A stretch of DNA of 64,000 nt from positions 186,001 to 250,000 of the IMG/VR virus record IMGVR_UViG_3300012931_000759; one strand, 5' to 3'. The position numbers and the translations under genes were made by a program. The notes beneath the pieces are model-generated. The model searched no databases, had not been told where the DNA came from, and saw only the letters and a program-made list of their open reading frames with translations. How positions within the stretch are numbered: position 1 is the stretch's first letter; each line of letters begins with the position of its first letter. Below, piece after piece: positions 2-56,179 of this stretch.

Positions 2-1345
2 TTGGGTCATGTTCAATCCGGAAAAGGACATGATCCGCAGGAGATCCACCTTTTCAAGGGGCGCATAGAGCAGATGGTTCGTCAGCAGACCAGCGCCACC
101 GGCGTGAAGCCAACCCCGACGGATTTCGCCCAGGCTTTGGAACAGGCAATAGTGGAAGTAATCGGCCATGAGGCCGGGCACATCGGGCCGGAGCGGCCGA
201 TTGTGCCGGGAGCGCAGCCTTTCCTTGGGGAACCGGAGGCTGAGACGAAGGCCAAGGAGACCGTCCGGAGGATCTATCCCGGAGCCGTCGCGCACGCGGC
301 CATCGAACTGGACGACATCAGACGGAAATTCATGCCAGATGCCCCCATGGGCGAGCCGGATCTGGCCTTTGTGGCAAAGGTTGCCGCCGGAAACGGCGCT
401 GGCGCCCTGCGCGACGGGTTGAGGATCTTGCGCCACGGCAGCGTGCCTGTGGCTTTGGCTATGGGACAGGCCTGCGTGTTCAACAGCCAGGTCGCGCGTC
501 GCACGGATGTGGCCAGGAAGTTGGGCTTCCTAGTGAGCCTGTTTGGGGCGCTGCCGAACTCCAACGATTTCGCGATGGCGCTTGCCGCCTGCCAAACGGA
601 CAACGGCCTCGAGCCGACAGGGAAGCTCGACCGTCCAACCATAGCGCACCTGCGCGCCCGCATGGCGCCCTCCGAGGAGTTCCCGCGCAACTTCGGCATG
701 GTGGCCGAGGGACTGTATCGCGGAAGGCAGCCCGACAGCATCGGGCAGCTCGCGGCCCTGCGCGACAGGCTGGGCGTCCGCCGCGTTGTGACGCTGAACG
801 ACGACGGCCCACCGATCGCCGACTGGTGCCGCCAGCTGGGCCTGGGGCACCTCCACGCGATGCTGTCGTCCGGCGCTCCCCAGGAGCCCGGATGGCAGGT
901 TTTCGGCCCCGAGCTGTCGGATTTCCTGCTTGAGACCCCCACATTCGTCCATTGCCGCCATGGAGCCGACCGGACGGGCGGCGTCGTGGCGCGGTGCCGC
1001 ACCGAGATGGGTTGGCCCTGCGACCTGGCATACGCCGAAGCCAAAGCCTTCGGTTTCAAGGACCGTTTCCCCGACATGGTCGACCGGTTTACCGACGCCT
1101 GCGGACACGACCCGCACGGGCACCGGCACCCGCCCATCGACACCGCCCTGATCCGCCGCATCATGGGGGCGGAGCTTGCCGCCAACGCCCCGCGTCCTTC
1201 GGTCGAGCAGGATCTGCTCGAGCCCACCCCGTTTGACCTCCACTACACCACCGACAACAACAGCTACGAGAGTGGGATCGATACGATCCTGTCGCCATAT
1301 TCCATCATGTCTATTCCGACAGGTTTTCCGGGGGCGGGGAGATGA
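2..1345 (+). CDS. Multidomain protein (5'-truncated): HEXXH segment, peptidoglycan-binding-like domain and protein tyrosine/dual-specificity phosphatase
   Basis: GHEAGH; NGLEPTGKLDRPT (PG-binding-like); NFGMVAEGLYRGRQP and P-loop FVHCRHGADRTG (CX5R). Confidence 0.8.
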   Translation: MGHVQSGKGHDPQEIHLFKGRIEQMVRQQTSATGVKPTPTDFAQALEQAIVEVIGHEAGHIGPERPIVPGAQPFLGEPEAETKAKETVRRIYPGAVAHAAIELDDIRRKFMPDAPMGEPDLAFVAKVAAGNGAGALRDGLRILRHGSVPVALAMGQACVFNSQVARRTDVARKLGFLVSLFGALPNSNDFAMALAACQTDNGLEPTGKLDRPTIAHLRARMAPSEEFPRNFGMVAEGLYRGRQPDSIGQLAALRDRLGVRRVVTLNDDGPPIADWCRQLGLGHLHAMLSSGAPQEPGWQVFGPELSDFLLETPTFVHCRHGADRTGGVVARCRTEMGWPCDLAYAEAKAFGFKDRFPDMVDRFTDACGHDPHGHRHPPIDTALIRRIMGAELAANAPRPSVEQDLLEPTPFDLHYTTDNNSYESGIDTILSPYSIMSIPTGFPGAGR

Positions 1346-1911
1346 GTTGTGAACTGACCCTCCTTGTACACCTAGCCGACGAGTTGGACAGGCGCGGAAT
1401 GCTCTGGGAAGCTGATGAGGTCGACCACATAGTGCGCTTGGCTGTCGGCGGGCCGGATGTAAGGGACTGGTTGCGCCGCCAGTATGAGCGTCTGCGCCGA
1501 CTCTTTTCCAGGAAAAAGACTGATCCAGGTGCCGCGAAGACGTACGACGCCGCTGCGGCGAACCGTCTGGATGACATGTTGCGTCGCAAACAGAGTGGCC
1601 CGCCGGATGAGCGCGTGTTTCTCTGGTTTTGCCAGCAGTTCCCGAATTCCTGTCCAGCTTGTCGCGGCCGACACGGCCGCATGCGAACCATGCGCCAATG
1701 GCGCGGGGAAGGCCTGCCAGGCCCCATGGTCTGTGAAAAGGACGATTGCGCGTGCCACCTTGTGCCGCTGCTGCCAGGAGGTGTTGCCCAGATGGATGAG
1801 GATGGCGACATCATGGCGAACATTACCGGCCTCCAGGAGGACAGCTCTGGCCACAGCATGAATCAAGGATTTGCTCTCGAGCCCTTCTTCAGCGACACAA
1901 CAACTAGTTGA
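1342..1911 (+). CDS. Head morphogenesis (Mu gpF-like Cys-rich) protein with N-terminal LxxLAxxLD helical motif
   Basis: CPAC-RGRHG...W..EGLPG...VC...CACHLVP; ATGA overlap with upstream gene. Confidence 0.55.
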   Translation: MSCELTLLVHLADELDRRGMLWEADEVDHIVRLAVGGPDVRDWLRRQYERLRRLFSRKKTDPGAAKTYDAAAANRLDDMLRRKQSGPPDERVFLWFCQQFPNSCPACRGRHGRMRTMRQWRGEGLPGPMVCEKDDCACHLVPLLPGGVAQMDEDGDIMANITGLQEDSSGHSMNQGFALEPFFSDTTTS

Positions 1912-1920
1912 GAAAGCCTG

Positions 1921-2080
1921 AGCGGCATCTACTTGATTACCAACCGCGTGAATAGAAAACAGTACATTATCGCAGCAAAACACACGGACTAGACAAAACA
2001 GAAGATGTCGCTAGCGTACAAAGGCAAATGTCCGGATCCCAGACCAGACAGAGGATGAGCACAGCCAGAAGCAGTTTTAT
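1921..2080 (+). pseudogene. Decayed GIY-YIG/NUMOD3 homing endonuclease remnant
   Basis: Reads SGIYLITNRVNRKQYI..KHTD*TKQKMSLAYKGK, then TRQRMSTARS in another frame; resembles 23250..23969. Confidence 0.7.
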
Positions 2081-2188
2081 GTAAAGTACCGAAACGCACG
2101 GTCCAGTTAGAATTTTCTCCATTCTTTGCGGTAGGTTGTAATATTGCGTTTTCCGCATTTTTTCCTCCTGACACGAAGTCCCGAAAAT

Positions 2189-2206
2189 CTATCAATATTT
2201 TCTCAT
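2189..2206 (+). promoter_or_regulatory. Putative phage late promoter CTATCAAT-N7-CAT
   Basis: CTATCAAT ATTTTCT CAT, intergenic, just upstream of ATG 2213; motif recurs 7 times. Confidence 0.7.
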
Positions 2207-2212
2207 AAAGGC

Positions 2213-2806
2213 ATGGATCGAATCCCCCGCACAGCTTGGTCTACCCAGCGATCGGTCCCCTTCTCTGAAGAAGAGAAGCAGGCCGCGCGCACAGCCATGG
2301 CCAAACTCGGGAACTTTCTCGGGCAGTTGTGGGCCGCCCAGCAGCACAGCGAGCGGCTGATGGACGTCCTCAACAAGGCGCCCGATACGCCGCCCGAACA
2401 GTTGTTTTCGATCCGTCATCTCATCAGGAAGTTCAGGGACGAGGTCCGCCAGCACTTCACGCAGCTAATTCCGGTCTTCTCTGCCGCCATCACGACGCTG
2501 AATCCGTTCGCGAAAGACACGGATACGGCTGCTATACGTGAGAGTCTCATCGACGCTATGCAGCAGCTTTCTGAGGTCATCGAGACCTACATGGAGACTT
2601 TCGAGGATTTTAATGCGCCGGACCAAATTCAGAGGCTAAAGGCTCTGTTCCAGAAGGTCAAGCAACTCTCGCAGAGTATCGAGGCGGTGATCAAGGGCAG
2701 GCTGCGCGACCATTTTGAGAAAAATATCCTGCGCCGCCAGAGGATCAGCGATCTACATAATGGCATCAGGCGCCGCGCGCGCCTGGTCGCCATGTTGGAG
2801 GGTTGA
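2213..2806 (+). CDS. Hypothetical helical head-module protein
   Basis: ORF with ATG at 2213 (MDRIPRTAW...). Confidence 0.7.
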   Translation: MDRIPRTAWSTQRSVPFSEEEKQAARTAMAKLGNFLGQLWAAQQHSERLMDVLNKAPDTPPEQLFSIRHLIRKFRDEVRQHFTQLIPVFSAAITTLNPFAKDTDTAAIRESLIDAMQQLSEVIETYMETFEDFNAPDQIQRLKALFQKVKQLSQSIEAVIKGRLRDHFEKNILRRQRISDLHNGIRRRARLVAMLEG

Positions 2807-2808
2807 AG

Positions 2809-2979
2809 ATGGGTTTTATCAAAAATGCAGATGGCGACCAGACTAATACCATCGAGCACGTTTTCGAAGGTGTGGATGAGGTGTTGGAGGAGATTGCCAG
2901 CCATGCGGCTCCGGACGAGCCCGCCCTCGTTGTGGATATGTCGAGTTTTGAATCTCTAGATAAAAAAGAATCCAACTAA
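2809..2979 (+). CDS. Small acidic protein (56 aa), not in the ORF track
   Basis: GGAGG RBS; MGFIKNADGD...KKESN*; TAATG overlap with next gene. Confidence 0.55.
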   Translation: MGFIKNADGDQTNTIEHVFEGVDEVLEEIASHAAPDEPALVVDMSSFESLDKKESN

Positions 2980-3644
2980 TGGGTTATAAGGATAGGGTCT
3001 GTAGCCGCTACAGTAAAACATACACGCCGCGCGCATCGAATCAGCAATATTGCGCTGACCTAGAATGTAGACGTTGGAACAGGAACCGTATCAACAGACA
3101 AGCGCGTAAACATCCAGAGAAAGAGGTTTGCTGTACCGTTTGTGGCACTGTGTTCTCGACTAGTAGGTGGAAACAGCAGCAATGTTGCGGAAAGGAATGT
3201 CGCAGTTTGTTTATGCGACTTAAGAACAAGGAATATTATGAGCAAGTTTTGAGACTGCGTAATAGTCATCTAAAAAGAGGTTATTCGTATCCGCAGAAAT
3301 ACATTTTCGAAGCAGTTTTCAAGCTGTTTCCAAATCTGGTCTGGCAATACGACGACCGTTCGACATTACGCAATCCGAACACAGGATATCCACTTGAATT
3401 GGATATCTGGTGTCCCGAAAAACGTTTTGCGATAGAATATGATGGGGAACATCATTTCTCCCCGAAACAGTTCGGACAGAAGGGGTTTGACTATGTGCGT
3501 CTCTTAGACGCCACCAAGACTAAGGAATGTGTCGACAAGAATATAGTCCTGTTGCGCATCTCCTGCCGGGATGACTGGCGCAACAAGGAATGGTTAGCTC
3601 AAAAGGTCGGAGAGTGCTTGAATGGCGTTTACCAAGTTTGCTGA
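2979..3644 (+). CDS. Free-standing homing endonuclease (Zn-finger plus Vsr/PD-(D/E)XK-like)
   Basis: CxxC motifs; LELDIWCPEKRFAIEYDGEHHF; low GC; overlaps the protease start. Confidence 0.75.
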   Translation: MGYKDRVCSRYSKTYTPRASNQQYCADLECRRWNRNRINRQARKHPEKEVCCTVCGTVFSTSRWKQQQCCGKECRSLFMRLKNKEYYEQVLRLRNSHLKRGYSYPQKYIFEAVFKLFPNLVWQYDDRSTLRNPNTGYPLELDIWCPEKRFAIEYDGEHHFSPKQFGQKGFDYVRLLDATKTKECVDKNIVLLRISCRDDWRNKEWLAQKVGECLNGVYQVC

Positions 3645-6600
3645 ATCTAGATTCACAGTTGAGGAGATTCATGCTCCCGAGGCGGCGCTGTCGGATTCTG
3701 TAGTATTGGACAGGTTCACTAAATATGCCAAGACTTTAAGGGCTATTGCCCCAAAAGCCAAGGATTTTCTTTACTTCTCCTGTGTGATGCTCCACTCCGA
3801 CACAGCTGCACTGGTTAATCAAGACACAGGAGAACCAATCCTTGGTAAAGATGGAAAACCTGTTACGGCGGAATGGGATATCAATCCGAAAACAGGATCA
3901 TATAAATGGAAATGTTCAGATCATAATATAAAACCTTTCAAAAATAACAACGGAGATATTTTCGTTGAATCTGAATTAAAAAAGGCTTATCGTAAATGGG
4001 TTGAAAAGCCATTGTGCCAGGATCATCAAAGTAACACGGTCGATGGTGTGCGCGGACTGATTTTGGATACTTATTGGGATGATAAGAGAAAACGTGTAAT
4101 AGGTTTGTGCGCCCTTGACCGAAAAAACTATCCCGATCTTGCACGAAAGGTTGAGAGCGGATATGCAACAAATGTATCTATGGGCACTGCCGTGGGTAGG
4201 TCGATTTGCTACGATTGTGGCAATGTGGCTAAAACCGAGGCCGAATACTGTGCCTGCGTGCGTGCCAAGAGGACCTACGGTGAAATCAACATTGATTTAT
4301 CTCCCATTGAATTGAGTCTGGTGGTTACTGGTGCCGATCCTCGTGCTAAGTTGCGCCATATCATCGCGAGCCTTAACGGATACGCGCAGCAGAAACAGGC
4401 TAGGATCGAGGAGCTACAGCGGGCCGGATGCGTAACTCCCGGCGAGCTGGACAGTCTGCGGGCAGAGGTCGAGGGGCTGCGTCGTCAGCTCTACGAGATT
4501 TCTAGGCTCCATGCACAGGCGGCGCTAGATCCGAGCCACGGGGCAGTGCTCCGCAATCTGCTTGAGATTATCAGCAATCCTGCCACTTCCGCCGAGACCA
4601 AAGCGTTAGCCGACAAGCAGATGAAGGAACTGCTGGGCGGCGTCGCCTCTCCGGAGGATCTGGCGAAGATGGAAACGCCCGCGCCTGCACCTACGGCGGC
4701 CGCCGAGGACGGCGACGGCGTGGAGGGGGCAGGGTGCGAACGAGTAGAAGATAAGCCCGAGGGACAGATGGTTTCCGACGTGGAGCCGCCCTACGGGCTC
4801 GCTGGAAACAAGGCCATGACCGGGGGACGAGGAAGGTCGTATTCCGAGGACCCCGAATCCAGTGGACCGCCACCTTGGTCCCTTGACGGGCGGGAAACCC
4901 GTCTTGCCAGCGGAAACCTGGATGCCCAAATCCTGGCAGTCCAGGAGTGGCTAGATTCAATGCAGACGACCCTGCAGAAGATGGCTGCGGACATCCAGGC
5001 GTCAGCAAACAGGACAAACCCGAAGGAGGAGAAGAACATGTCCGATCTGAAGGAGAGGGCTCGCGCCCGTCGCGCGGCGTTCGAGAAGAACGCCTATCAC
5101 CAGGGGGGAGGCGGTGTCAACGAACCGCAGACCTACCCCAAAGAGGAAGCGGACAAGATCCGCAACACCCAGGACAAGCAGATGGTTGGCGAGGGCATGG
5201 AACCCGGCAACGACGGCTTGGCCGGAAGTGATCTAGCTCTGAAGAAGAAACTGCTCCGTGCCGATCTCGAGGAACGCCGCCTGCGTCGGCATGCACTACT
5301 CGCCAAGGGCGAGGAGATCGTCAAGGTCAAGGCGCCGGACGGAACCGACGTGTCCCTCACAAAGGGCGCCGACGGCAAGTGGACGGTCGCCCCAGCTCAG
5401 AAGGACGACGATCCTGGACTCGAGGTGAATGCGTATTTCCAGGGCGGCGGCGGTGTCAACGAACCGCAGACCTACCCCAAAGAGGAAGCGGACAAGATCC
5501 GCAACATCCAGGACAAACAAATGGTCGGTGAAGGGATGGAGCCCGGCAATGATGGCTTGGCCGGAGACGACCTAGCTTTGAAGAAGAAACTGCTCCGTGC
5601 TGAGCTGACCGCCAAGTTCATCAAGGTCTATGCTGGCCAGGACAAGGCCGAAGTCGACCGGAAGCGCAGCCGCTGGGAAGTCTACGCTGGCGGCCAGAAG
5701 CTCTTCGAGGCGACCGGCGAGCAGATCTATGACGAGGGCGATCTTGTCGACGATAACTACTGGAACCATCTGTCCTCTGCGGACTACGGTCGACGCATTA
5801 TGTCCGCCATTCGCCGCGAGGGTTTGGATAAGACCGCATACCTGCTGACCGGCAAGGTCGTGACGGCCCAGGAACCGGCTCTGCCACCTCCAGGTATGCC
5901 GCCCGCCCCGATGGCCTCCCCGGCCGAGGCTCCCAAGCCTCCCGAGGAGGAGCTTAAGAGCGAAGAGAAGCCGGGCGCCGAGTCCGCCAAGAACAGGGTT
6001 GACGAGGCCCTGGCCGATGTCGAGAAAGCCCTCGGCGACTTGAAAGATGTCCTCAAGGAGGAAGGTGAGTCGAAGGAAGGTGGTAAGGAGGAGCTTCCGC
6101 CGATCGAAATTGGCGAGGCTGCTAAGACCGCCTCTGACATCCGCGCCGCTCTCGATGATAGCGGCGACGAGCTAGCCATTCTTTCCGAGGTTCTCGGCAA
6201 GAGGATCGAGGCTGGCATGACGGCCGGAACCGAGATGGACGAGCTGTTGAAACTGGCCGGCGAATCCCTCGAGGCGAGCGCCGAGATCGTCCGCGAGGCC
6301 GCACTCGTGGTCGAGGCTAAGAAGGGCAAAATGCCCGAGGGCCTGAAGAAGGCGCTCGAGAAGAAGGAGAATGGCGGGAAAGACGAGGAGGACGAGGAAA
6401 AGGGCAAAAAGAAGGAGAAGGAGAAAGGCAAAAAGGACAAGAAGGAAGAGAAGGGTGAGAAGAAAGAGAAGGGCAAAAAGGACGAGAAAGAGGAGAAGGG
6501 CGAGGAGAAAGACGAGAAAGAGGAGAAGGAAGAGAAGAAGTCCGAGGCCGAACTCGTTCTGGAGAAGATGCTGAAAGCACGCGCCGCCAAGCGGCGTGAG

Positions 6601-7602
6601 CTTGTCCGCCTAGCTATCGAGGGAGAGAAGGAATCCCACGAGGAGGCGGAGCACGAGGTTACTGAGGAAATGGAGGAAGGCATTGAAGGTCTCGAGGGTC
6701 TGATGGAGGAACTCGAGGGGATTGAGGAGAAGGAATCTGCCGCTCAGTATGCCGACGAGCCTGCCGCACAGTACGCTGAGGAAGAGGACCCTCTAGTGGC
6801 CGAACTCTTGTCCGAGCTGGACAAGGAAGAGGTGCCGGAGGAAGAAACCGACAACATGACTACCATGGCCGGGCGCCGTGCCTGGCGCGAGAAGGTGGCC
6901 GCCGAAGTCGGTTCGAAGTACCAGCTGAAGTTGGATTCCGCGACCGACATGGACACCGACATGGTACCCAAGGCGCATCCGCAGGGTGGGCACACTCTCG
7001 AGGGACTCGACACTAAACCCTCTGACGAGGGTGCCAAATTCGAGGGCATCGATGAGGTCAAGGCCAAGATTATGAAGCAGGTTGAGAGCTTGCCGCCTGT
7101 CCGCGAGGCCGTCGCCAAGGTGGGCGATCTGCTCAAGTCCGGCAAACTCACGGTGGCCGACCTGTCTAACAACGCCAAGCTGAAAGCGTTGGCGGTCGAC
7201 CCCGAGGCCGCCAAGTACTGGAAACAGTATTTTGGCGAGGGCGACCAAGATAGCAAGCAGTTTGGCGCTGACATGTCCAAGGAGTTCGCCCAGAAGAAGG
7301 CGGCCGCTGAGGCTGAGTCCTACAAGTTGAAACTCCGCAGGGCGGTCGATCTGGCGCTCGACATGCAGGACAAGGGTCTTGTTAGCTCAGGCCGCGAGGC
7401 CATGAACAAGCAGGTCGACGACATCATGAAATTCGACGACCAGGCATTCGAGGCCTTTAAGCGCGCAATGTCCCGCACCACCAATGTCGCGAAGGCCGCC
7501 GGGAAAGCTGAACCGGCCCTCCAGGTTGGCATCAGAGAGGAGGCGGAAACTACCAACCTCTCCGACCAGCTAGGACGTCTTTGGGCACCAAAGAAGCGAT
7601 AG
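3622..7602 (+). CDS. Prohead protease fused to a long scaffold-like region
   Basis: NNNGDIF, KPLCQDH, VSMGT, ELSLVVTGADPRA (prohead protease-like); acidic, coiled-coil C-terminal region; position in head module. Confidence 0.75.
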   Translation: MAFTKFAESRFTVEEIHAPEAALSDSVVLDRFTKYAKTLRAIAPKAKDFLYFSCVMLHSDTAALVNQDTGEPILGKDGKPVTAEWDINPKTGSYKWKCSDHNIKPFKNNNGDIFVESELKKAYRKWVEKPLCQDHQSNTVDGVRGLILDTYWDDKRKRVIGLCALDRKNYPDLARKVESGYATNVSMGTAVGRSICYDCGNVAKTEAEYCACVRAKRTYGEINIDLSPIELSLVVTGADPRAKLRHIIASLNGYAQQKQARIEELQRAGCVTPGELDSLRAEVEGLRRQLYEISRLHAQAALDPSHGAVLRNLLEIISNPATSAETKALADKQMKELLGGVASPEDLAKMETPAPAPTAAAEDGDGVEGAGCERVEDKPEGQMVSDVEPPYGLAGNKAMTGGRGRSYSEDPESSGPPPWSLDGRETRLASGNLDAQILAVQEWLDSMQTTLQKMAADIQASANRTNPKEEKNMSDLKERARARRAAFEKNAYHQGGGGVNEPQTYPKEEADKIRNTQDKQMVGEGMEPGNDGLAGSDLALKKKLLRADLEERRLRRHALLAKGEEIVKVKAPDGTDVSLTKGADGKWTVAPAQKDDDPGLEVNAYFQGGGGVNEPQTYPKEEADKIRNIQDKQMVGEGMEPGNDGLAGDDLALKKKLLRAELTAKFIKVYAGQDKAEVDRKRSRWEVYAGGQKLFEATGEQIYDEGDLVDDNYWNHLSSADYGRRIMSAIRREGLDKTAYLLTGKVVTAQEPALPPPGMPPAPMASPAEAPKPPEEELKSEEKPGAESAKNRVDEALADVEKALGDLKDVLKEEGESKEGGKEELPPIEIGEAAKTASDIRAALDDSGDELAILSEVLGKRIEAGMTAGTEMDELLKLAGESLEASAEIVREAALVVEAKKGKMPEGLKKALEKKENGGKDEEDEEKGKKKEKEKGKKDKKEEKGEKKEKGKKDEKEEKGEEKDEKEEKEEKKSEAELVLEKMLKARAAKRRELVRLAIEGEKESHEEAEHEVTEEMEEGIEGLEGLMEELEGIEEKESAAQYADEPAAQYAEEEDPLVAELLSELDKEEVPEEETDNMTTMAGRRAWREKVAAEVGSKYQLKLDSATDMDTDMVPKAHPQGGHTLEGLDTKPSDEGAKFEGIDEVKAKIMKQVESLPPVREAVAKVGDLLKSGKLTVADLSNNAKLKALAVDPEAAKYWKQYFGEGDQDSKQFGADMSKEFAQKKAAAEAESYKLKLRRAVDLALDMQDKGLVSSGREAMNKQVDDIMKFDDQAFEAFKRAMSRTTNVAKAAGKAEPALQVGIREEAETTNLSDQLGRLWAPKKR
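5089..5601 (+). repeat. Two ~174-bp (58-aa) direct repeats, 5089-5262 and 5428-5601
   Basis: NAY(H/F)QGGGGVNEPQTYPKEEADKIRN.QDKQMVGEGMEPGNDGLAG.DLALKKKLLRA twice. Confidence 0.95.
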
Positions 7603-7608
7603 GACCTT

Positions 7609-7641
7609 GGCGCCTGGAGCCAACAACTCCAGGCGCCTTTT
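7609..7641 (+). terminator. Rho-independent terminator
   Basis: GGCGCCTGGAG/CTCCAGGCGCC stem followed by TTTT. Confidence 0.7.
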
Positions 7642-7659
7642 CCTTAAACAGGATCCAAC

Positions 7660-7830
7660 ATGCCGGAAAAGGGAAAGTCGCTCCGCGAGGAGCTCGAGGC
7701 GGAGTTTGCCGACCTCAGGGAGTTGGGTGTGACGGAGGAGGAGCTGGAAGCCCTGTATGAGCAGTGCGGGCTGAAGCCGCGGCGCGTCTTGGTGCTGAAC
7801 ACCGGGCGCGCCCAGGCGCACCCGAAGTAG
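7660..7830 (+). CDS. Small hypothetical protein (56 aa), not in the ORF track
   Basis: AGGA RBS; MPEKGKSLREELEAEF...AHPK*; fills the gap between genes. Confidence 0.6.
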   Translation: MPEKGKSLREELEAEFADLRELGVTEEELEALYEQCGLKPRRVLVLNTGRAQAHPK

Positions 7831-7838
7831 GAGACACC

Positions 7839-8099
7839 ATGAGCGGATTACGCATTTCCGACGAGATAGCCGCCGCGATGGCGGAGCGGTTGGGTCTCTT
7901 CAGGAAAGCGACCTCTGCGGTCGAAGGCTTCAAAGCCCAACTCGCAGCGGCCAACACCTGTGAGCAGCTGACCCAACTGCGTGCTTTCTGGCTGGATGGA
8001 AGAGGCGCCAGTCAGTTGAACGCGGAGGGTGGCGATGTCGCCTACGGACAAGCCATGCGCGCGTTCCTAGAGAAGAAGAAAGCCCAAGGATGCCCCTAG
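7839..8099 (+). CDS. Small putative internal head protein
   Basis: AGGAG RBS, ATG 7839; DEIAAAM...LFRKA shared with the next gene. Confidence 0.7.
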   Translation: MSGLRISDEIAAAMAERLGLFRKATSAVEGFKAQLAAANTCEQLTQLRAFWLDGRGASQLNAEGGDVAYGQAMRAFLEKKKAQGCP

Positions 8100-8112
8100 G
8101 AGGATACGGGAG

Positions 8113-8904
8113 ATGACAACTCTCAAGACATATCATGCCGACGAGATCGCCTCAGCCATGAGCGCGCAGCTTGGGAACGAGGAGTTTGTTGGCCTCTATA
8201 GGAAAGCTGAAGCCACCTGGTGGCAGAAGGGTCCGTCTTCGCAGACCTTTAAGGCCGAGATGGACGCAGCCAAGACACCCGCCGAGGCGGTCGCGATCCA
8301 CAACAAGTGGCTGGCGTCCGGCTCGGAGGGCGCAACTAAGCTGGGCAAGGAGCACGATGACTTCTCTCCGCTGGTTGATTATTCCGAGGAGCGGCGCATG
8401 CAGCTCGGCGGCCAGAAAGCTGAGGACGCCGCGCAGGAGGCCGACAAGGGCTGTCCTAAGCATCCCGAGGCGCAGGACGGATGTCCCGAATGCGCGGACG
8501 CTGCCGACGGAGTCGGCCTGGCAGTAGCTATCGACTTCGCCATCAGGCACATCGTGAAGGTTGCTGATGCGCTGGACAAAGTAGGGTATGTAGGCGTAGC
8601 TGGTGCACTGGACGAGACTCTCCAAAAGTTGGCGGCGTCCCGACCAATTGTATCCGAGGCAGCGCGCAGCTACAAAGAATGGGTATCCTTCCTCCGCAAG
8701 AAGAGTCCGAAGGCTGCCGAGAAGTTCAGCAAGACCTACAAGAGCGCCCTGAAGGACAAAAAGAAAGAACTCGGGGCTGAGAAGGCCGAAGAATATGCCA
8801 TGAAGACTGCCCTCGACGGCGTGCCTAAGAGCTACCTCAAGGAACCGACTCCCAAGCACGGCAAGGGCAAAAGTGGTCCGCTGACGGCAAAACGTTCAAA
8901 ATGA
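8113..8904 (+). CDS. Putative internal head protein
   Basis: DEIASAM...LYRKA; IVKVADALDKVGYVGVAGALDETL motif; basic C-terminus. Confidence 0.65.
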   Translation: MTTLKTYHADEIASAMSAQLGNEEFVGLYRKAEATWWQKGPSSQTFKAEMDAAKTPAEAVAIHNKWLASGSEGATKLGKEHDDFSPLVDYSEERRMQLGGQKAEDAAQEADKGCPKHPEAQDGCPECADAADGVGLAVAIDFAIRHIVKVADALDKVGYVGVAGALDETLQKLAASRPIVSEAARSYKEWVSFLRKKSPKAAEKFSKTYKSALKDKKKELGAEKAEEYAMKTALDGVPKSYLKEPTPKHGKGKSGPLTAKRSK

Positions 8905-8925
8905 TACATAGACTGGAGACCGGGC

Positions 8926-9618
8926 ATGTTGAGATTGGTCCAAATTGGCAACGCGCTTCCTTTATCATATCCGGTTGATTCTACTTCTGTTTTTGAACCA
9001 GGGATGATTGCGCAGTTAAAGCTTGCTGGCCAGGATATTGTGGCCGGCTTGTCCGACGGGACGGCGCCGCTGGGGATCATCGACGATGTCAGATCGACGG
9101 CGTTCACGCGCCCGTCTATCGACGAGACTGTGGTCATCAAGTGTACGGGCATCCTAGATGCGTACGGACGCTACATCAGCACGGCGGACGCAAAACAGGA
9201 GCTGCTCAACCCTAATGTGGTACCGGCAAGCTTCGTGGCCGACTATGAGAACCTGGTCCTGAATCCGGTCAACGGCATCCTGATGGCTCCGGCTGGAAGC
9301 GTGCTCAATTTCGACCTAGACGGGGACGGGAAGCCGGACAGTATCAGGACGGTCGTTAACTATGTGTACACAATTCCCGACCTGCCGGGCGAGGACACCA
9401 CGGTCGGTAGCAACAGGATGACGATCTGGTTTACTCGCGGCGTGTACATTACGGACAAGTTCGACACGACGCAGAAGTATCCGCTCAATGCGGCCTTGTT
9501 TGTGAACGAAGAGGGGCTGCTGACTACAAAACAGGCGACGCCAAACCACCCCGCCGTGGCAATGATAAGTGGCCCACCCAGTGCGATGTTAAATAATCTT
9601 GAACTGCTATGGCTTTGA
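8926..9618 (+). CDS. Putative head decoration/structural protein
   Basis: Beta-rich; weak similarity to 16366..17037 (MLRLVQ/MALRILQ; RMTIW..GVY / KVTAW..GLY). Confidence 0.55.
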   Translation: MLRLVQIGNALPLSYPVDSTSVFEPGMIAQLKLAGQDIVAGLSDGTAPLGIIDDVRSTAFTRPSIDETVVIKCTGILDAYGRYISTADAKQELLNPNVVPASFVADYENLVLNPVNGILMAPAGSVLNFDLDGDGKPDSIRTVVNYVYTIPDLPGEDTTVGSNRMTIWFTRGVYITDKFDTTQKYPLNAALFVNEEGLLTTKQATPNHPAVAMISGPPSAMLNNLELLWL

Positions 9619-9626
9619 TATTATTA

Positions 9627-9846
9627 ATGAAAAAATATAAAACAGACTATCAGGAATGGATAAAAGCTGATGTCGAACAATTGAAACAGAAATATGTTTG
9701 TGCCAAAGCGCGACCCCGGTTGTGCCAAGTATAAGACGGATAACGGCATCTGCCTATGCGTAGATTGTCATAACAGCATTAAAGGGCGCGAACACGAGAT
9801 GCGAGACAGATATCTCGCCATTGTTGCCTCCAAGGAGAGTCTATAA
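9627..9846 (+). pseudogene. Decayed HNH endonuclease remnant
   Basis: AT-rich; one frame reads KYKTDNGICLCVDCHNSIKGREHE..., the C-terminal half of an HNH motif. Confidence 0.6.
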
Positions 9847-10199
9847 TGCCTTTTGCACCCGAAGACAAGCGCGCGTGGCTTGACAGCGAGGTGATGGCCG
9901 AGCTAGAGAAGATTGCTAAGGAGACCGATCTCCTCGGTGGGCCTCCGAAGGAGGCTTTTGAGCCCATTGAGGAGAAGACTGCCGCCCAGTCCTCATGGGA
10001 GGACGAGGATGTGCCGGAGGCTCCGGCGGATCCGGACGCTGGCCGGCGCGCGGCGTTGGCGTCACACGGTGCGCGGCTCGCGAAGACACTGGAAAGGATG
10101 GCGCAGGATCTCGCCGAGGCTGGCCGTCCGAAAGCGGCCTATCGCCTGGAGCGGGCGCTTGCCGCCCTAAAGGATATCGCCGAAAAGGGAGGAGAGTGA
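9846..10199 (+). CDS. Putative internal head protein
   Basis: SEVMAELEKIA N-terminal motif; LERMAQDLAEAGRPKAAYRLE motif. Confidence 0.65.
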   Translation: MPFAPEDKRAWLDSEVMAELEKIAKETDLLGGPPKEAFEPIEEKTAAQSSWEDEDVPEAPADPDAGRRAALASHGARLAKTLERMAQDLAEAGRPKAAYRLERALAALKDIAEKGGE

Positions 10200-10200
10200 G

Positions 10201-13200
10201 ATGCGCCACATCAAACCGAGCGAGAGCACGGTGATGCAGGAGTTCGAACGTATCGCCGCTGAGAAGGGATGGATCGTACAGGTTGCCGCAAAGCCGGGCG
10301 AGTTTTTTATCGAGCAGACCAAGTCGGTAATGCCGCAGAGCAATACGCCTCCGGCCCCGGAGGACAAGCTGCTCGAAACCTGGTCCCGGCTATCCGACAA
10401 GGACAAGAATGCTCTCGTCATCGGTTGGGATGGAATGCTCCAGGCCCAGCTGCTCGACCAGTTGAAGCAGCCGGGTATACAGCGGAAGCTTCTGGAGAAG
10501 GCTAGCCAGCCTGCGGCCCCCGCTTCCGCGCCAGCCACGTCAGCCGCACCGGCCGCCGCGCAGTCTGAGAAACCCGCGAAGCGTAAATGGACGCGCGATG
10601 ACCTGGTGAAGGATGTCCAGTCCGTGCTCGCAATCCACTTCAAGGACCCTTCGAAAGTCGGCAAACGAGGGCCGGATGGATTCTGGGGACCGGCGACCGC
10701 CAAGGCCTGGAACGAGTGGATCGCCCAGACGGGCAACGACGCCGTCGCCAAGGCGGATCCGCGTGGGATGAAGCCGCCTCCCGACAAGGACATGTACTGG
10801 GTTGCGTACACCTATGGATCAACAATCAAGCCGAAAACCAAATCCCCGGCACCCGCCGGAGGTGGTCTGATCAACCCGTTCGAGGGTGACAAGGTGACGC
10901 CGGACCTCATCAATCCATGGGCGAAGGAGAGTTCGACAATGGCCAAGAACATCAGGACAGCGCAGGATCCGGTTCCGGAGCATGTTCCAACTGGACTCGT
11001 GAAAAAGCCACATGAGATGCCGATAGGTGCGGAATCGCCGACAACGATACAGGACATCGATAAAATGTTGGCTGGAACAAAGGAACCGACTCCAAACTAT
11101 GGAGAACAGCTTGTGTGGCAGATTCAGGAGGCGGTTCTGAGTTTAGTGCCGGGAGCACGCAGCCGCATGGTTGGCGCCAAGGCACCGGGCGGAGTGGATG
11201 GCATTTGGGGCCCGAAAACAGTCGGGGCCCTTAGCGAAGCTGCGCTTGTGTTCGATCTTCCAGAGACAACGCGCATCCTCAATTCCAGCAGAGACAGACG
11301 TCCTGGAACACAGGCGCTCCAGACGATTTTGTCGGAGCTTCTTCAGGCGGCAGAAAAAGGACAAGGAAAAGAAATGTCAACATTCCCAGCCAGTCCAGAA
11401 CATGTCCCCGCTGGCCTGGTCAAAGAGCCGCACATGACCAGATCTTGGCAAAATCATAGAGAACCAGAGTTTATGCGAAAATCATCTATCGATACAATCA
11501 ATGAGCTGGTGGCATTAGCTAACGATCTCGATGAGATGGGCGAGGTCAAGGTCGCCGAGGCCGTCGACGAGCAGCTTCACCTGTACAAGACCGCCTTCGA
11601 CAAGCTCTATGACATCACGGGCGAGACCGGCGAGCAACTAGTCGGCCAGGCCCATCCGGGCGGAGGTCCGACCATGGCACCCGCCAAGGACGAGGGTGGC
11701 AAAGTTGAGACCGTCGTGGAAGAGCAGCAGAAGGATCTGAAGGTGGTCAAGACCCAGCCTACCGGCAAGCAGGCCGCCTTTGTGGCACGCCAGCTCGTCG
11801 CGTTGGCCAACCGGCTGGATGCCGAGGGGAAAACGGAGGCCGCCCTGCTTGTCGACAAAACGCTCGCCGAGCTTCGGGAGGGCTCCGCCCGCCCTTTCGT
11901 CGTTAACGGTCTCCGCAAAGAGGCTCTATTTCCTGTGCTTCCTGCCCTCGTGATGGGTCTTGGTATCGGTTTGACGGCGCTTGTCCAACTGATGTCATCC
12001 CGCCAGGAAAACCTGGATGAGGATCTTGGCGATTATTTGGCGGTGTTGGATAAACTCGCACAAGACGATGCGAAATGGCAGCCCTATGCAAGCGGCCTAC
12101 GAACTACTTTGGAACCGTACCGCAAGATGTTCAAACAGCCGCCGCCCGAGGATGCAAAGGCTCGACAGGCACACAAGACCAAACTCTTGGAATTTGGCGA
12201 CACCATTCTGCCACAGATGGAACAAATGACCAATTCCATTCCCAAAAGTTGGTGGACCGTCGGTTTCGGGAAAGATTTCCGCATCAGGGACAAACTCGAC
12301 GATGTGAAGACATCCTACAACGAAATCCTTACCATCCTGAATAGGGCGGATGAATTGGCGGCTTCAAATAAGATCCCGGCCGACAAGACGCCATCCCCTG
12401 AAGCCGCCAAGGAGGAGCGGCCATACGAGAAGCAATTGCGGAAAACCCTGCGGGCATCCTATACTAAGTTTAAAGGCACGGTCGACCAATTGCTGAATGG
12501 GTTGGTCAAAGCGCTCCAGGATCCGGCCAAGGAAATCGAAGCCAACCAAATGCTTAAAGGCAAACTCAACGAGACGATAGATTGGTTGAAGACCCTGCGC
12601 CAGCAAAAGGAGCCCACAACCCTCACTGAGAGGAATACCCTCAACAACTACAACAATATCCTGTGGAATGACTATCTCGGACCTCTTCGCCGCAATCCAA
12701 AATTAGCCGACGTGTTCGCTTCGGTCAAGGATGGACATCTGGTGAGAGAAGCAGCTCCTCCAAAACCGGCTGCGCCGGGAATTCCAGGTGCGCCTGTCGG
12801 TCCATTGAACCAGCCTACGGCAAAAACCGGTCCAGCTAAGCCTAAGCCTGGCGTTCGGCGCCCGGCCAAAAAACCGCGTCTTGAATTACAACAGCTACAG
12901 CAGCTGATGCTGACGCTCAACCTGCCGCTCGGCACACGCAAGGCCGACGGTGTGTGGGGACCATACACAGCCAAGGCCTGGAATAGGCTCAACCACATGG
13001 TCGGTGGACGCCTCGGAGCCGCGCCCTCGGAGAAAACCGAGGGGCCCACGGCCGCCCAGATCGACGTCGCCACACGCGTGGCAAACGTGTTGACACGCCG
13101 CCAGGCGATTGTGGAGATCGCCCCCGGCATCTCTCTGCCGACAGGTGCTTTCGCCAATGTCCAGGTTTTCATGCGGGCCTTGGCCACGAGGCGTGCGGCG

Positions 13201-13851
13201 GGGATCGACACAAGCGGGAACCTCGATACGGCCGCCAATCGCAAGCGCGCGTTGGAACTGCTTCGCGGATTCGCCGGACGCATGGAGGACGAAGATATCC
13301 AGCTCAATCTCGCCGCCAAGCTCGGCACGCAGGAGGCCCAACGTCTGCCGCAGCAGATAAACACTCTGCTCGACGCGCTTGGCGCCGCCGAGACCGGCAT
13401 TCCGTCGTACCGCAGGCCGGAAGGCGAACGTCGCCCCGGATACGGCGAAAACCAGCCATATGGTCGCGGCGAGGGTAGCGCGAGTCCCTTCGGCACTTTG
13501 GAAGGCGGACGTCGCGGTCGCGGCGAGGGCGGCGAGATGGGCGGCTACGGAGAGGGACGTATGTCGCTGGAGAGCCGGGTCTACAACATCCCGGACGTCT
13601 CCGGTTTCGTGAATGATCCGATGCAGTTCGCGATCTGGGCCCAGCGGTACTGGCTGAGCCGGACCCGTGAGGAGGGCGAGCCCTACGCCATCGCCTACAA
13701 GGTGGTCAAGGCGCTGCGCGGCGACATCGCCAATCTCCAGAACGCGCTGATGCGGCAACCGGTGCGCAACCGCGACGAGCTCCAGACCACCCTACAGCAG
13801 CGGCACGAGGCGTTGATGGACGTGTACACCTCCCTGCCGAAGGGGCGATAG
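10201..13851 (+). CDS. Large putative internal/ejection protein with three peptidoglycan-binding-like motifs and a hydrophobic helix
   Basis: DGFWGPAT, DGIWGPKT, DGVWGPYT; two LVALANxLD motifs; hydrophobic segment after GLRKEA. Confidence 0.65.
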   Translation: MRHIKPSESTVMQEFERIAAEKGWIVQVAAKPGEFFIEQTKSVMPQSNTPPAPEDKLLETWSRLSDKDKNALVIGWDGMLQAQLLDQLKQPGIQRKLLEKASQPAAPASAPATSAAPAAAQSEKPAKRKWTRDDLVKDVQSVLAIHFKDPSKVGKRGPDGFWGPATAKAWNEWIAQTGNDAVAKADPRGMKPPPDKDMYWVAYTYGSTIKPKTKSPAPAGGGLINPFEGDKVTPDLINPWAKESSTMAKNIRTAQDPVPEHVPTGLVKKPHEMPIGAESPTTIQDIDKMLAGTKEPTPNYGEQLVWQIQEAVLSLVPGARSRMVGAKAPGGVDGIWGPKTVGALSEAALVFDLPETTRILNSSRDRRPGTQALQTILSELLQAAEKGQGKEMSTFPASPEHVPAGLVKEPHMTRSWQNHREPEFMRKSSIDTINELVALANDLDEMGEVKVAEAVDEQLHLYKTAFDKLYDITGETGEQLVGQAHPGGGPTMAPAKDEGGKVETVVEEQQKDLKVVKTQPTGKQAAFVARQLVALANRLDAEGKTEAALLVDKTLAELREGSARPFVVNGLRKEALFPVLPALVMGLGIGLTALVQLMSSRQENLDEDLGDYLAVLDKLAQDDAKWQPYASGLRTTLEPYRKMFKQPPPEDAKARQAHKTKLLEFGDTILPQMEQMTNSIPKSWWTVGFGKDFRIRDKLDDVKTSYNEILTILNRADELAASNKIPADKTPSPEAAKEERPYEKQLRKTLRASYTKFKGTVDQLLNGLVKALQDPAKEIEANQMLKGKLNETIDWLKTLRQQKEPTTLTERNTLNNYNNILWNDYLGPLRRNPKLADVFASVKDGHLVREAAPPKPAAPGIPGAPVGPLNQPTAKTGPAKPKPGVRRPAKKPRLELQQLQQLMLTLNLPLGTRKADGVWGPYTAKAWNRLNHMVGGRLGAAPSEKTEGPTAAQIDVATRVANVLTRRQAIVEIAPGISLPTGAFANVQVFMRALATRRAAGIDTSGNLDTAANRKRALELLRGFAGRMEDEDIQLNLAAKLGTQEAQRLPQQINTLLDALGAAETGIPSYRRPEGERRPGYGENQPYGRGEGSASPFGTLEGGRRGRGEGGEMGGYGEGRMSLESRVYNIPDVSGFVNDPMQFAIWAQRYWLSRTREEGEPYAIAYKVVKALRGDIANLQNALMRQPVRNRDELQTTLQQRHEALMDVYTSLPKGR

Positions 13852-13853
13852 TC

Positions 13854-14885
13854 ATGGACAAGCGGGCTTTCGATTTCAGCGAACTCGCTCAGAACGCGGC
13901 CCGCAGCGTCTGGTCGCAGATCGGCGACCTGAAGCAGATCCGTGAGAGGCCGTTTGAACTGTTGTTTAAGTACATAACGCCCGGCCTACTCATGCTACGC
14001 GGCAAGTGGATCCTCGCCGCCCTATTTGGGGTGGCTGACGATGTGCTGAACATCGGACCAGCCCGCATCGGCGCGTGGCTCGACAAGATGATCGGCAAGG
14101 GTCCTGGAAGCGGCAACACCGACGCTGTGAACGAGACGGATCTCATGAGCGCATCCAAACGGGTCATTGACGGCATCACGGGTGCCCTTTTCACCAAATC
14201 GTCAGCTTTCCGACGCGAGGTCGAAAGGCGAGGTGTTGTCGATGCTCGCGCTTTCGTGGTGGCCTGGGCGCATGGCCCCGACGGGACGATCGAGAAAAAT
14301 GCGGCCTCCCTGTCATCGAAGGTGAGGTCCTGGCTGGCGATGAGCCCCTATAAGTCGGGCGGTTTTTTCAGCGGTATGCTCTTCTCATTCTTGAAGGCTT
14401 TCCTGGTCGGGTTGGGCATCCATAGCGGGCTCAGCATGCTGTTTGGCGGCGGTGGGGGAGAGGTTGCCATGCGGCCATCGGCCACGCCAGGCGCCCCGGG
14501 CGGTTCGGGAACCGCAGCCTCCGGCATGAGGCTCTACGTAAACGCCGCTGGCAATGTCGAGCGGTCGCTGATCATGGCGCTTGACGGCCTCATCAGGGAC
14601 AAGGAAGGCAGGCCGTTCTCGGTCCTGTTCGCCGATTTGAAGGGCTATCCACTGGAGGGCTCCCCCGAAATGGACCGCGTGCTCGGCGAGGTCCGGGCGG
14701 CCCATGGGGGAGCCTCGATCTACGAGATCAGCGGCTACAAGACCTTCGCGGCGCCGCCTCCGGCGGGGATCGCCAGGATACTGCTGCCGCAGGCGACATA
14801 CACCAAACAAACCGCTCCTCCGTCGGCGGCATCCAAACCCGACGCCGAACGGGAACTCGAGGGTATTCTCGGAGGGAAACAATGA
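13854..14885 (+). CDS. Putative internal/ejection protein with hydrophobic segments
   Basis: MDKRA, IEKNA motifs; FFSGMLFSFLKAFLVGLGI segment. Confidence 0.6.
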   Translation: MDKRAFDFSELAQNAARSVWSQIGDLKQIRERPFELLFKYITPGLLMLRGKWILAALFGVADDVLNIGPARIGAWLDKMIGKGPGSGNTDAVNETDLMSASKRVIDGITGALFTKSSAFRREVERRGVVDARAFVVAWAHGPDGTIEKNAASLSSKVRSWLAMSPYKSGGFFSGMLFSFLKAFLVGLGIHSGLSMLFGGGGGEVAMRPSATPGAPGGSGTAASGMRLYVNAAGNVERSLIMALDGLIRDKEGRPFSVLFADLKGYPLEGSPEMDRVLGEVRAAHGGASIYEISGYKTFAAPPPAGIARILLPQATYTKQTAPPSAASKPDAERELEGILGGKQ

Positions 14886-16189
14886 CAAGGGAATGGAACG
14901 GCAGCCTGGTGATGGAGGAATTCGCCAAAATCGCCGCCAAGAGCGGTCTCATCACTACCGATTTCGACAAGCCGATCGTCGGGAACTCGAACAAGTCCCC
15001 CGTCGGTCCCTTCAGGAACAATCCCAGTGTAAGCGGGAAAACGGACACCTTGTCAGTCGATTCCAATTCCAAGGACTACGGCGTCACGAAAGAGACGGGC
15101 GAGGAATTGGTCGATGAGGCGCATCCGGAAGATCCCCGAATCGCAGAGTCGATGGGTAGAGGCTGGGAGGTAGAAAATATCGTCCAGCAACAAGAGCAGG
15201 ATATCGGGGTCGCCACGCGGATGCCCTCCGGCGCACTCTACGGCAAACATGCCGAGCTGGTGGGCGCACTGGTCCGGCTGGCAGACAAGCTCGACGAGGA
15301 AGGGCGCAAAGAGGCGGCCAAGAGGATTGACCGAGCCATCGGGAGGATCTCGAGGCTCCCTTTTAATGGAGGCCTCCGTAAGGAGGCCATCGGTTTCCTG
15401 GCGGGACTACTCGGACCCCTGAAAACCCTCTTGTGGGGTGGAGCTGCCCTTTGGGGCGGCGCTACCTTTGGCCCGGCTCTGTTGGCGAAACTCACCAGTT
15501 CGCGCGAGAACCTGGCCACAGACATCGGGGACGTCCTTGAAGTGGCAGGCAGCGTTCGCGAGGATGATCCATCCCTGTCGACCGTCGAGGGTCGACTGCG
15601 CACCCTGCTGTCGCCCTTTGCGGTACAGTTCCGCAAGCCGATGCCGACGCCCGGAGACGAGACAGGATTGCGTGAATACCTCGGGCTCCTCGAGGAATTT
15701 GGAACGCGCGTCCTGACGGACGCAAGGGCGCTTGTGACAGCCATGACGGCCGTGCGGGGTGGATGGTGGGAGGGAATTGGGTTCGGTCCCAAATCACGGC
15801 TGATCGAGAAAATGAAGGATATGGAAGAAACGTTCCAGGGCACTATGATGGCTGTCCGAGCGGCCGCCAAGGTGGGCGAGAAGTTGCCCGAGGCCGCCAA
15901 GGCTGAAGTTCCGTCCGGAGGCAATATCGCTGAAATCCAGGCGCTGCTCGCCGAACGCGGGCTGAAGATTTCGCAGAGCGGCAAGCTGGACGACGCTACT
16001 GTGGACGCGCTCAAGCAGCTAGAGCTGCGGATCGACGTCGACCTGCGCCGCGACCCGAGGATGGCCGAGATCCTCGAACGGCGTGGATGGAGCGTAGCGG
16101 GATCGCTGCTGCGTCCCGACGGCAAGACGGTCGACGTGGACACGGTGCGCCGCTTACTTGCGCTGGCGGACAGAGCCGCAGGCAAGTAG
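14882..16189 (+). CDS. Putative internal/ejection protein, paralogue of the central part of 10201..13851
   Basis: Shared ETGE.LV..AHP, LVxLAxxLD, GLRKEA, SSR.ENL and WW..GFG blocks; C-terminal SGKLDDAT (PG-binding-like). Confidence 0.65.
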   Translation: MTREWNGSLVMEEFAKIAAKSGLITTDFDKPIVGNSNKSPVGPFRNNPSVSGKTDTLSVDSNSKDYGVTKETGEELVDEAHPEDPRIAESMGRGWEVENIVQQQEQDIGVATRMPSGALYGKHAELVGALVRLADKLDEEGRKEAAKRIDRAIGRISRLPFNGGLRKEAIGFLAGLLGPLKTLLWGGAALWGGATFGPALLAKLTSSRENLATDIGDVLEVAGSVREDDPSLSTVEGRLRTLLSPFAVQFRKPMPTPGDETGLREYLGLLEEFGTRVLTDARALVTAMTAVRGGWWEGIGFGPKSRLIEKMKDMEETFQGTMMAVRAAAKVGEKLPEAAKAEVPSGGNIAEIQALLAERGLKISQSGKLDDATVDALKQLELRIDVDLRRDPRMAEILERRGWSVAGSLLRPDGKTVDVDTVRRLLALADRAAGK

Positions 16190-16365: not shown

Positions 16366-17037
16366 ATGGCTCTCAGGATTCTTCAGCCGGGCATCCAGCC
16401 GCTCGGACAGTTCGATTTCGCAGACGGTTACCTGCTTAGCGTTAAGGGCGGCGAGGTTTGTACCCTTGTGGCTCTGTCGCGCACAAACACCGCTTCCGAA
16501 AAGGCGGCTGCGGACGCGCTCGATGGCTACACCAACTACTCTCAAAACATGCGCGCTGGCCTGACCCTTAACATCGCAGTCAACACGGCCCGCCCGCTGT
16601 GGCTGACTGATGACGGCACCGGCGCCTCTGGCATCATCCAGGGGTACGGCACGCTGTTCGGCCAGGTGATCGGCACCCCTGTCGGTCTTACGACCTCGGG
16701 AACCAACCTCGGTCCCCACACCGCCCTTGCCTCTGGCAAAGTGACCGCGTGGGACAAGCCGGGCCTCTACGCTGTGACGCTCGACGCTGTCGACACTGAC
16801 GCGACGAACGGCCTTCAGCCAAGCAACGTGGCCATGGTGCCGCAGAAGGCGATCTACCCGACGATCCTCGGTGTTCTGACCCCGACGGCCGGACGTTCGG
16901 TCGGCGCTGCTGGCCCCACGGTCGCCCGTTTCGTGGAGTTTGAATCCACCGCCCGCTCTCTCGTCCGCACGCCTGCCTCGCTCGTGGGCGCGACTCCGGT
17001 CTGGGAGCACGCCGTGATTTCGTACTTTGTCGAGTAG
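16366..17037 (+). CDS. Head decoration/cement protein
   Basis: Immediately upstream of the major capsid gene, strong RBS, biased codon use; 2 DGY. Confidence 0.65.
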   Translation: MALRILQPGIQPLGQFDFADGYLLSVKGGEVCTLVALSRTNTASEKAAADALDGYTNYSQNMRAGLTLNIAVNTARPLWLTDDGTGASGIIQGYGTLFGQVIGTPVGLTTSGTNLGPHTALASGKVTAWDKPGLYAVTLDAVDTDATNGLQPSNVAMVPQKAIYPTILGVLTPTAGRSVGAAGPTVARFVEFESTARSLVRTPASLVGATPVWEHAVISYFVE

Positions 17038-56098: not shown

Positions 56099-56116
56099 CT
56101 ATCAATAAACATGTAT
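56099..56116 (+). promoter_or_regulatory. Putative phage late promoter for the tail operon
   Basis: CTATCAAT AAACATG TAT. Confidence 0.65.
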
Positions 56117-56179
56117 CAGACCAAGGAAGGGCGCATCTGCGTCAGTTACGACAATTTTGCCGCCTGGAGGACTCAACCG

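Follow-up and report, generated by a model that had tools for sequence, protein, structure and literature searches.

A helix-turn-helix hairpin on otherwise diverse head-region proteins of a jumbo phage related to Bacillus phage G: a candidate module for loading proteins into the prohead

The capsid targeting sequence (CTS) of phage T4 is a peptide of about 10 residues, P22-type scaffolding proteins bind the coat via a C-terminal helix-turn-helix domain that uses basic residues, and the cargo-loading peptides of encapsulins, the shell of which adopts the HK97 fold, as well as the encapsulation peptides of microcompartments are short linear or single-helix elements. In the T-even phages, the internal proteins form a diverse set, and the CTS is their sole common feature (PMC3012670). 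Here we describe a module of about 35 residues, consisting of an amphipathic helix, a glycine turn and a second helix, which recurs on proteins encoded in the head region of an uncultured phage. The window, i.e. the whole stretch of 64,000 nucleotides that was analyzed, comprises bases 186001-250000 of one 340,392-bp phage contig with a GC content of 55.7% (IMG/VR record IMGVR_UViG_3300012931_000759). The contig represents a jumbo phage from a clade related to Bacillus phage G, with an estimated genome completeness of 84% and without a DNA-level match to cultured phages. In total, 331 IMG/VR contigs encode a capsid protein that is 74-97% identical to the one of the window, and the closest cultured relative of this major capsid protein is gp27 of Bacillus phage G (52% identity).

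The original prediction listed six motif strings in five proteins of the window, and indeed we could find all six of them on the + strand. The positions that it gave turned out to be the starts of the open reading frames, while the motifs themselves start at window positions 1363, 8551, 10089, 11506, 11794 and 15269. We built a profile from these copies and ran it on all six-frame segments of the genome, which revealed ten copies in eight proteins (window positions unless marked as genome positions):

1342-1464, + strand: hairpin, residues 1-41 of the 189-residue protein encoded at 1342-1911 (E = 3.1e-12)
8530-8649, + strand: internal hairpin, residues 140-179 of the 263-residue protein encoded at 8113-8904 (E = 4.0e-12)
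10065-10190, + strand: degenerate C-terminal hairpin, residues 74-115 of the 117-residue protein encoded at 9846-10199 (E = 4.7e-9)
11485-11604, + strand: hairpin copy 1, residues 429-468 of the 1216-residue protein encoded at 10201-13851 (E = 1.6e-15)
11770-11892, + strand: hairpin copy 2, residues 524-564 of the same 1216-residue protein (E = 2.4e-14)
15245-15370, + strand: internal hairpin, residues 122-163 of the 435-residue all-helical protein encoded at 14882-16189 (E = 8.8e-14)
genome 154691-155698, + strand, upstream of the window: 335-residue protein with two hairpin copies
genome ~161470-162168, + strand, directly 5' of the terminase gene: protein of about 232 residues with one copy
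genome 168900-170081, + strand, just 3' of the portal gene: 393-residue protein with the tag at residue 2

Five of the six window copies match the strict pattern, and the copy in the protein encoded at 9846-10199 (LERMAQDLAEAG...) is degenerate, with an E-value of 4.7e-9 against the general profile. Since the motif is short, one could suspect a chance or compositional match. However, 20 residue shuffles of the six-frame segments gave 0 pattern and 0 profile matches, compared to the 10 observed, and the profile retrieved 1,723 protein clusters at E ≤ 1e-3 and 99 at E ≤ 1e-10 from 1.84 billion representative sequences. From the shuffles we conclude that chance is excluded for practical purposes.

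The only paralogous carriers in this genome are the 1216-residue and the 435-residue proteins, which share 40% identity over about 290 residues outside the motif, whereas the remaining carriers have the hairpin alone in common. In both paralogues a hydrophobic stretch comes right after the hairpin, together with an 'RPF' motif in the 1216-residue protein (after hairpin copy 2) and an 'LPF' motif in the 435-residue protein. In the protein encoded at 8113-8904 the hairpin is kept in orthologues, and the C-terminal part shows a sub-threshold ChaB-like match. The start codon of the gene at 1342-1911, which encodes a protein with a Cys-rich C-terminal part, overlaps the stop of the gene upstream; the latter (window 2-1345) encodes a protein without the hairpin that has sub-threshold matches to tyrosine-phosphatase families and to a peptidoglycan-binding domain.

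Apart from the hairpin, the three adjacent carriers encoded at 9846-10199, 10201-13851 and 14882-16189 have another short motif in common at their N-termini, which reads roughly as V-M-x-E-F-x-K-I-A-x-x-x-G-[LW]-I and also persists in orthologues from relatives without the canonical hairpin. Between the two hairpins of the protein encoded at 10201-13851 lies a block (window 11605-11769, 'KLYDITGETGEQLIxxAHPGGGPTxxPAKxEGGKVETIVEEQKK...PTGKYA'), which is more conserved than the hairpins, with a mean column identity of 58% in the alignment and many invariant columns. Its AHP-type motifs recur in the 435-residue paralogue (residues 66-95) and in the protease-scaffold protein encoded at 3622-7602, and the block is possibly a protease or assembly site.

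The consensus of the module reads M-[IL]-K-E-L-[IV]-K-L-A-[ND]-x-L-D-x-K-G-x-x-K-E-A-D-x-[LIV]-D-x-x-I-K-K. AlphaFold2, supplied with a 45-sequence alignment, modelled both hairpins of the 1216-residue protein as helix, three-residue turn and helix, with a predicted local distance difference test score (pLDDT) of about 90 for copy 1 and about 89 for copy 2. The helices of this two-hairpin model span residues 2-23/27-52 and 100-119/123-138; the linker between the hairpins is of low confidence and the hairpins do not pack confidently against each other (predicted template modelling score, pTM, of 0.31). The single-sequence model of the 435-residue carrier was poor (pLDDT 53) and served for secondary structure only. 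Conservation among 155 N-terminal copies is 92-100% at each of L9, A13, L16, D17, G20, A25 and D29. Those that are hydrophobic or small fit the packing face of the hairpin, whereas D17 and D29, which are of surface type and 94-95% conserved on unrelated proteins, do not. For this reason, Asp17 and Asp29 appear to be the best candidates for a contact surface, as judged from the alignment.

The hairpin is a widespread unannotated domain that is absent from Pfam and PHROGs, as no family of either collection covers it in the window proteins, in 103 metagenomic carriers or in the tagged proteins of relatives. No PDB entry scored below E = 1 in a Foldseek search with the two-hairpin model or below E = 0.18 in a profile search of the PDB sequences, and the ESM Atlas look-up returned unnamed clusters only; the homologues of the 435-residue carrier are likewise all unnamed. 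A literature search that covered the motif strings and jumbo-phage capsid targeting turned up no description of the hairpin. A lone match to the T7 scaffolding family (PF05396) was discarded, because the hairpin profile misses T7 gp9 and a Pfam scan of ten candidates was empty.

Metagenomic carriers range from 61 to about 1,900 residues and contain one to three copies each. A scan of viral contigs with the commonest variant yielded 44 loci, many of them on contigs of more than 100 kb, and of five large contigs tested, four have a capsid protein of the same family (61-78% identity). In the loci of these relatives, 118 of the 136 copies (87%) start directly after the initiator methionine. One contig contains about 12 tagged genes in roughly 9 kb, each of which begins with the tag and continues with unrelated sequence, the shared opening being M-[IL]-x-E-L-I-K-L-A-x-x-L-D-x-K-G-L-x-K-E-A-D-Y-L-D. 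The tag DNA in this array is mostly 62-71% identical, with one pair at 96%, and therefore the peptide is kept by selection and not by recent copying. Among 75 non-redundant tagged proteins, the mean identity of the tag core is 50%, while the remainder of these proteins showed similarity in 8 of 2,775 pairs only, which leaves 68 unrelated groups. From the combination of about 50% tag identity, a start after the initiator methionine and 68 unrelated C-terminal groups we conclude that the hairpin is very probably a portable docking module under selection.

Phage G and two relatives, G003 and G004, the capsid proteins of which are 74-76% identical to that of the window, are devoid of canonical copies. 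The G003 and G004 orthologues of four window carriers have a degenerate hairpin at the same position, e.g. IIKLCAGLREQGMEKYANDLE, and therefore the hairpin of the head-module proteins is old. Only part of the clade shows the sharply conserved form and the expansion of the latter onto many small proteins.

The recognizable domains on tagged proteins are few and mixed, including LysM (two proteins), a cell-wall hydrolase (Hydrolase_2), cupin, DnaJ, PilZ, zinc ribbons and EF-hands, and one metagenomic carrier has a ferritin-like domain. No family shared by the 103 metagenomic carriers was detected with Pfam and PHROGs. In the 1216-residue carrier of the window, the N-terminal part gave sub-threshold endolysin-type PHROG matches. 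Because one and the same signal sits on both wall-directed and cytoplasmic cargo, delivery within the virion fits better, as far as we can infer, than a classical export signal. In the relative G006, an N-terminally tagged protein (L090, 4262-5296) displays LAS/VanY-type metallopeptidase motifs by eye (SxxR...H-x3-G-x-A-x-D...H-x-H), a family that Pfam did not report for it.

Next, we related the copies to the genes of head morphogenesis. All ten lie at genome 154.7-202.2 kb on the + strand, that is within 48 kb or 14% of the contig, in an interval that holds the terminase, portal and protease genes and ends just upstream of the capsid gene. The genes in question are:

genome 162332-164182, upstream of the window: large terminase
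genome 164195-168451, upstream of the window: portal protein, 1418 residues
3622-7602, + strand: protease-scaffold protein, 1326 residues, prohead-protease domain at residues ~108-217; candidate receptor or processing enzyme
16366-17037, + strand: decoration-like protein, 223 residues, just 5' of the capsid gene, at the place held by the decoration protein gp26 in phage G
17147-18172, + strand: major capsid protein (phrog_2522, E = 3.4e-76); candidate receptor of the hairpin
28714-30234: fibre-like protein
56111-58708: tail sheath

The tail-sheath and fibre-like genes, further along the window, are free of hairpin copies. A complete relative of 442 kb, the capsid protein of which is 97% identical, shows a similar clustering, with 11 of 13 matches in the 42 kb adjoining the capsid gene, and another relative has about nine copies immediately 5' of the protease gene; orthologous copies upstream of the capsid gene occur in many contigs. 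We nevertheless regard gene position as weak evidence either way.

Several features of this region deserve mention in their own right. In the protease-scaffold protein, the protease domain is followed by a long charged, repeat-bearing, scaffold-like extension. A repeat of about 60 residues (NAYxQGGGGVNEPQTYPKEEADKIRN...) occurs twice in this protein, in imperfect copies separated by some 130 residues, and there is also a very long Lys/Glu-rich stretch. The decoration-like protein is kept in all relatives examined; by eye it is related to the 230-residue protein encoded at 8926-9618, both being beta-rich and decoration-like, and the two show 44-81% identity across all relatives examined. Three homing-endonuclease-type genes are located within the head module (window 2979-3644, 18325-19911 and 19650-20699), one of which is HNH-like, one carries four 'HNH_repeat' units and the third, directly 3' of the capsid gene, is of the LAGLIDADG type. 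The portal-family matches of the 1418-residue protein fall into two parts, residues 542-710 and 1098-1289, with nuclease-, thymidylate-synthase- and PhoH-type PHROG matches between and before them, which suggests that the protein may hold at least one intein or inserted domain. Directly after the portal gene and the tagged gene next to it, genome 170084-173980 encodes a 1298-residue protein with an N-terminal ATP-dependent DNA-ligase domain; a ligase gene also flanks a tag array in a relative.

We propose that the hairpin would serve as a common docking handle, through which many unrelated proteins of the clade could reach one shared partner, and we infer that this partner is a single one. The likeliest partner would be the interior of the assembling prohead, namely its core of protease and scaffold, the region around the portal or the inside of the capsid shell. 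To this destination, which appears to us as the best single explanation in view of gene position, analogy to described systems and the mix of cargo, we assign a probability of roughly 40%. The carriers would then be internal head proteins, some of which may later be ejected into the host. Very large capsids such as that of phage G pack their DNA at lower density (PMC5646251), which may leave room for internal proteins. More speculative, and in our estimation rather doubtful, is the extension of this proposal to a sorting code of giant phages, in which a solitary N-terminal hairpin resembling the tetratricopeptide repeat (TPR) would load dozens of unrelated effectors per genome for co-injection with the DNA; cell-wall enzymes, chaperone co-factors, binders of nucleotide signals and anti-defence proteins would represent the cargo.

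However, a number of observations weigh against loading into the prohead. A simple terminal signal would not be expected inside the protein chain, where six of the ten copies of this genome lie, nor twice in one protein, as in two carriers. The original prediction is supported in part: the element is discrete, strongly conserved and portable on unrelated proteins, but the internal copies run counter to it. Likewise, its statement that the motif is not seen outside the head module applies to this genome, where 10 of 10 copies lie in the head region, but not to distant relatives: four of these, with capsid proteins of 61-78% identity, have 45 canonical copies, of which 9 are located in the terminase-to-capsid interval and the remaining 80% outside the head module. 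The non-head copies are found in arrays of small genes with a DNA ligase gene and an anti-restriction gene among the neighbours. Moreover, there are tag-only mini-proteins of 46-75 residues, which is odd for an address label, as these lack any cargo. No conserved cleavage motif follows the tag, where some 15% of the copies make up no more than a weak peak of [ASG]-x-E, and the protease-scaffold protein is without a copy detectable by the profile (a hairpin-like stretch noticed by eye near its C-terminus was not supported by the profile). Finally, none of 50,697 records of cultured phages was matched by tblastn when the carriers and a two-hairpin mini-protein served as queries. A co-folding run without controls, on the capsid protein and the hairpin of the protein encoded at 14882-16189, returned 'no answer' with a score of 0.00 and was used neither for nor against binding.

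The main rival explanation is a handle for docking or oligomerization without any link to the capsid, in which the TPR-like hairpins would form stacks, either with one another or with a hub that the phage encodes (for instance an envelope complex, or a factory for replication or assembly), and proteins with several copies would act as cross-linkers. The existence of tag-only proteins and of proteins with two or three copies is consistent with such a role, and so is the location of most copies of distant relatives in accessory-gene arrays outside the head modules; designed or consensus TPR hairpins come closest in the profile and fold searches, though none of these matches is significant. The copies of this genome and its closest relatives are, however, confined to the head region, and no TPR-array protein was detected in the genome with Pfam models. 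Stacking is further disfavoured by profile position 29, the TPR stacking position, which is occupied by a nearly invariant aspartate, and self-association is not supported either, since AlphaFold2 did not confidently pack the two hairpins of the 1216-residue protein together (pTM 0.31). Taken together, we consider this explanation somewhat improbable. Another explanation is a purely structural role, according to which the hairpin would be a folding cap or solubility element that was spread by tandem duplication and has no common partner. Its conserved hydrophobic and small residues are indeed those expected to pack the helices together, and by eye the degenerate hairpins of G003 and G004 have lost most of the consensus including the Asp residues. 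This would leave unexplained why hundreds of copies on unrelated proteins keep two surface-type aspartates at 94-95% conservation and why the tag begins exactly at the initiator methionine in 87% of the copies, and 68 unrelated C-terminal partners are hard to reconcile with the absence of a shared function, which renders a structural role alone very unlikely.

The cargo itself could argue for an adaptor directed to the host, which would bind one host structure, e.g. an envelope component or a chaperone, and bring effectors there after ordinary intracellular expression. DnaJ, PilZ and cell-wall binders are suggestive of host manipulation, and arrays of small variable genes adjoin an anti-restriction gene. 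On the other hand, the same tag occurs on large head-module proteins syntenic with the capsid gene and on the products of genes flanking terminase and portal genes, the cargo points to two compartments, and the tag has no hydrophobic signal-peptide character. Because the hosts of such a wide clade are probably diverse (GC content of 41-56%), a single conserved host target is less likely, and we regard the adaptor as decidedly unlikely. Loading into the prohead interior thus remains the explanation we favour for the destination of the hairpin.

To our knowledge, most of the proteins that giant phages carry inside the head and eject have yet to be identified, and outside the T4-like phages there is no sequence rule to predict them. 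If the hairpin does direct loading, the proteins that a large and globally distributed clade of uncultured phages injects could be read from metagenomes, and the hairpin could be used to package foreign proteins into HK97-fold capsids of very large size. The sorting code, if true, would give phages an 'effector delivery system' in which the address label can be read from the sequence. Should the partner be a different one, the hairpin would still mark a shared interaction network, since no fewer than 68 unrelated protein types carry it, and this network could be probed with one bait.

A comparison with known small helical motifs separates the hairpin from several of them. Classical DNA-binding helix-turn-helix motifs comprise 20 residues with A-x3-G spacing and a basic recognition helix, whereas A13 and G20 of the hairpin are spaced by 7 residues and its conserved polar residues are acidic. 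The D-x-[DN]-x-[DN]-G loop and the 12-residue ligand spacing of EF-hands and dockerins are absent, the hairpin being D17-x2-G20-x8-D29, and EF-hand/dockerin Pfam matches on carriers are isolated, with the one located lying outside the motif. The likeness to the TPR is closer, as the repeat has about 34 residues and the series hydrophobic-x2-L-[A/G]-x2-hydrophobic-x3-G-x4-A fits TPR positions 4, 7, 8, 11, 15 and 20; designed and consensus TPR proteins are the top matches by profile and by fold, without being significant. Positions 24, 27 and 32, however, are not kept, the stacking position is a nearly invariant Asp, and the hairpins, one to three per protein, are solitary or usually tens to hundreds of residues apart and never form a contiguous array. 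In line with this, Pfam TPR_12 and TPR_8 had no match in the genome at E ≤ 1, and Pfam scans of the carriers revealed no TPR. We conclude that the hairpin is TPR-like in geometry but not a TPR.

Among systems that sort proteins into shells, encapsulins and microcompartments share with the role predicted here the concept that one portable element directs unrelated cargo into a shell, although their peptides are linear or single-helix and the element described here is a hairpin. The coat-binding domain of P22-type scaffolding proteins resembles it as a small helix-Gly turn-helix (AlphaFold2, pLDDT about 90), and the all-helical carrier encoded at 14882-16189 occupies the classical scaffold position 5' of the decoration and capsid genes; the hairpin differs in being N-terminal or internal instead of C-terminal, and its conserved polar residues are acidic. 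Compared to the T4 CTS, the hairpin is folded and longer (about 35 residues), it can also lie within a protein or be present two or three times in it, and no cleavage site is conserved downstream of it. An N-terminal position like that of the T4 CTS is seen in 87% of the copies in relatives and in 2 of 10 in this genome, where the carriers are encoded among head genes. As in T4, a short leader is found on otherwise diverse, fast-evolving small proteins, as seen in the 75 tagged proteins with their 68 C-terminal groups and in the gene arrays.

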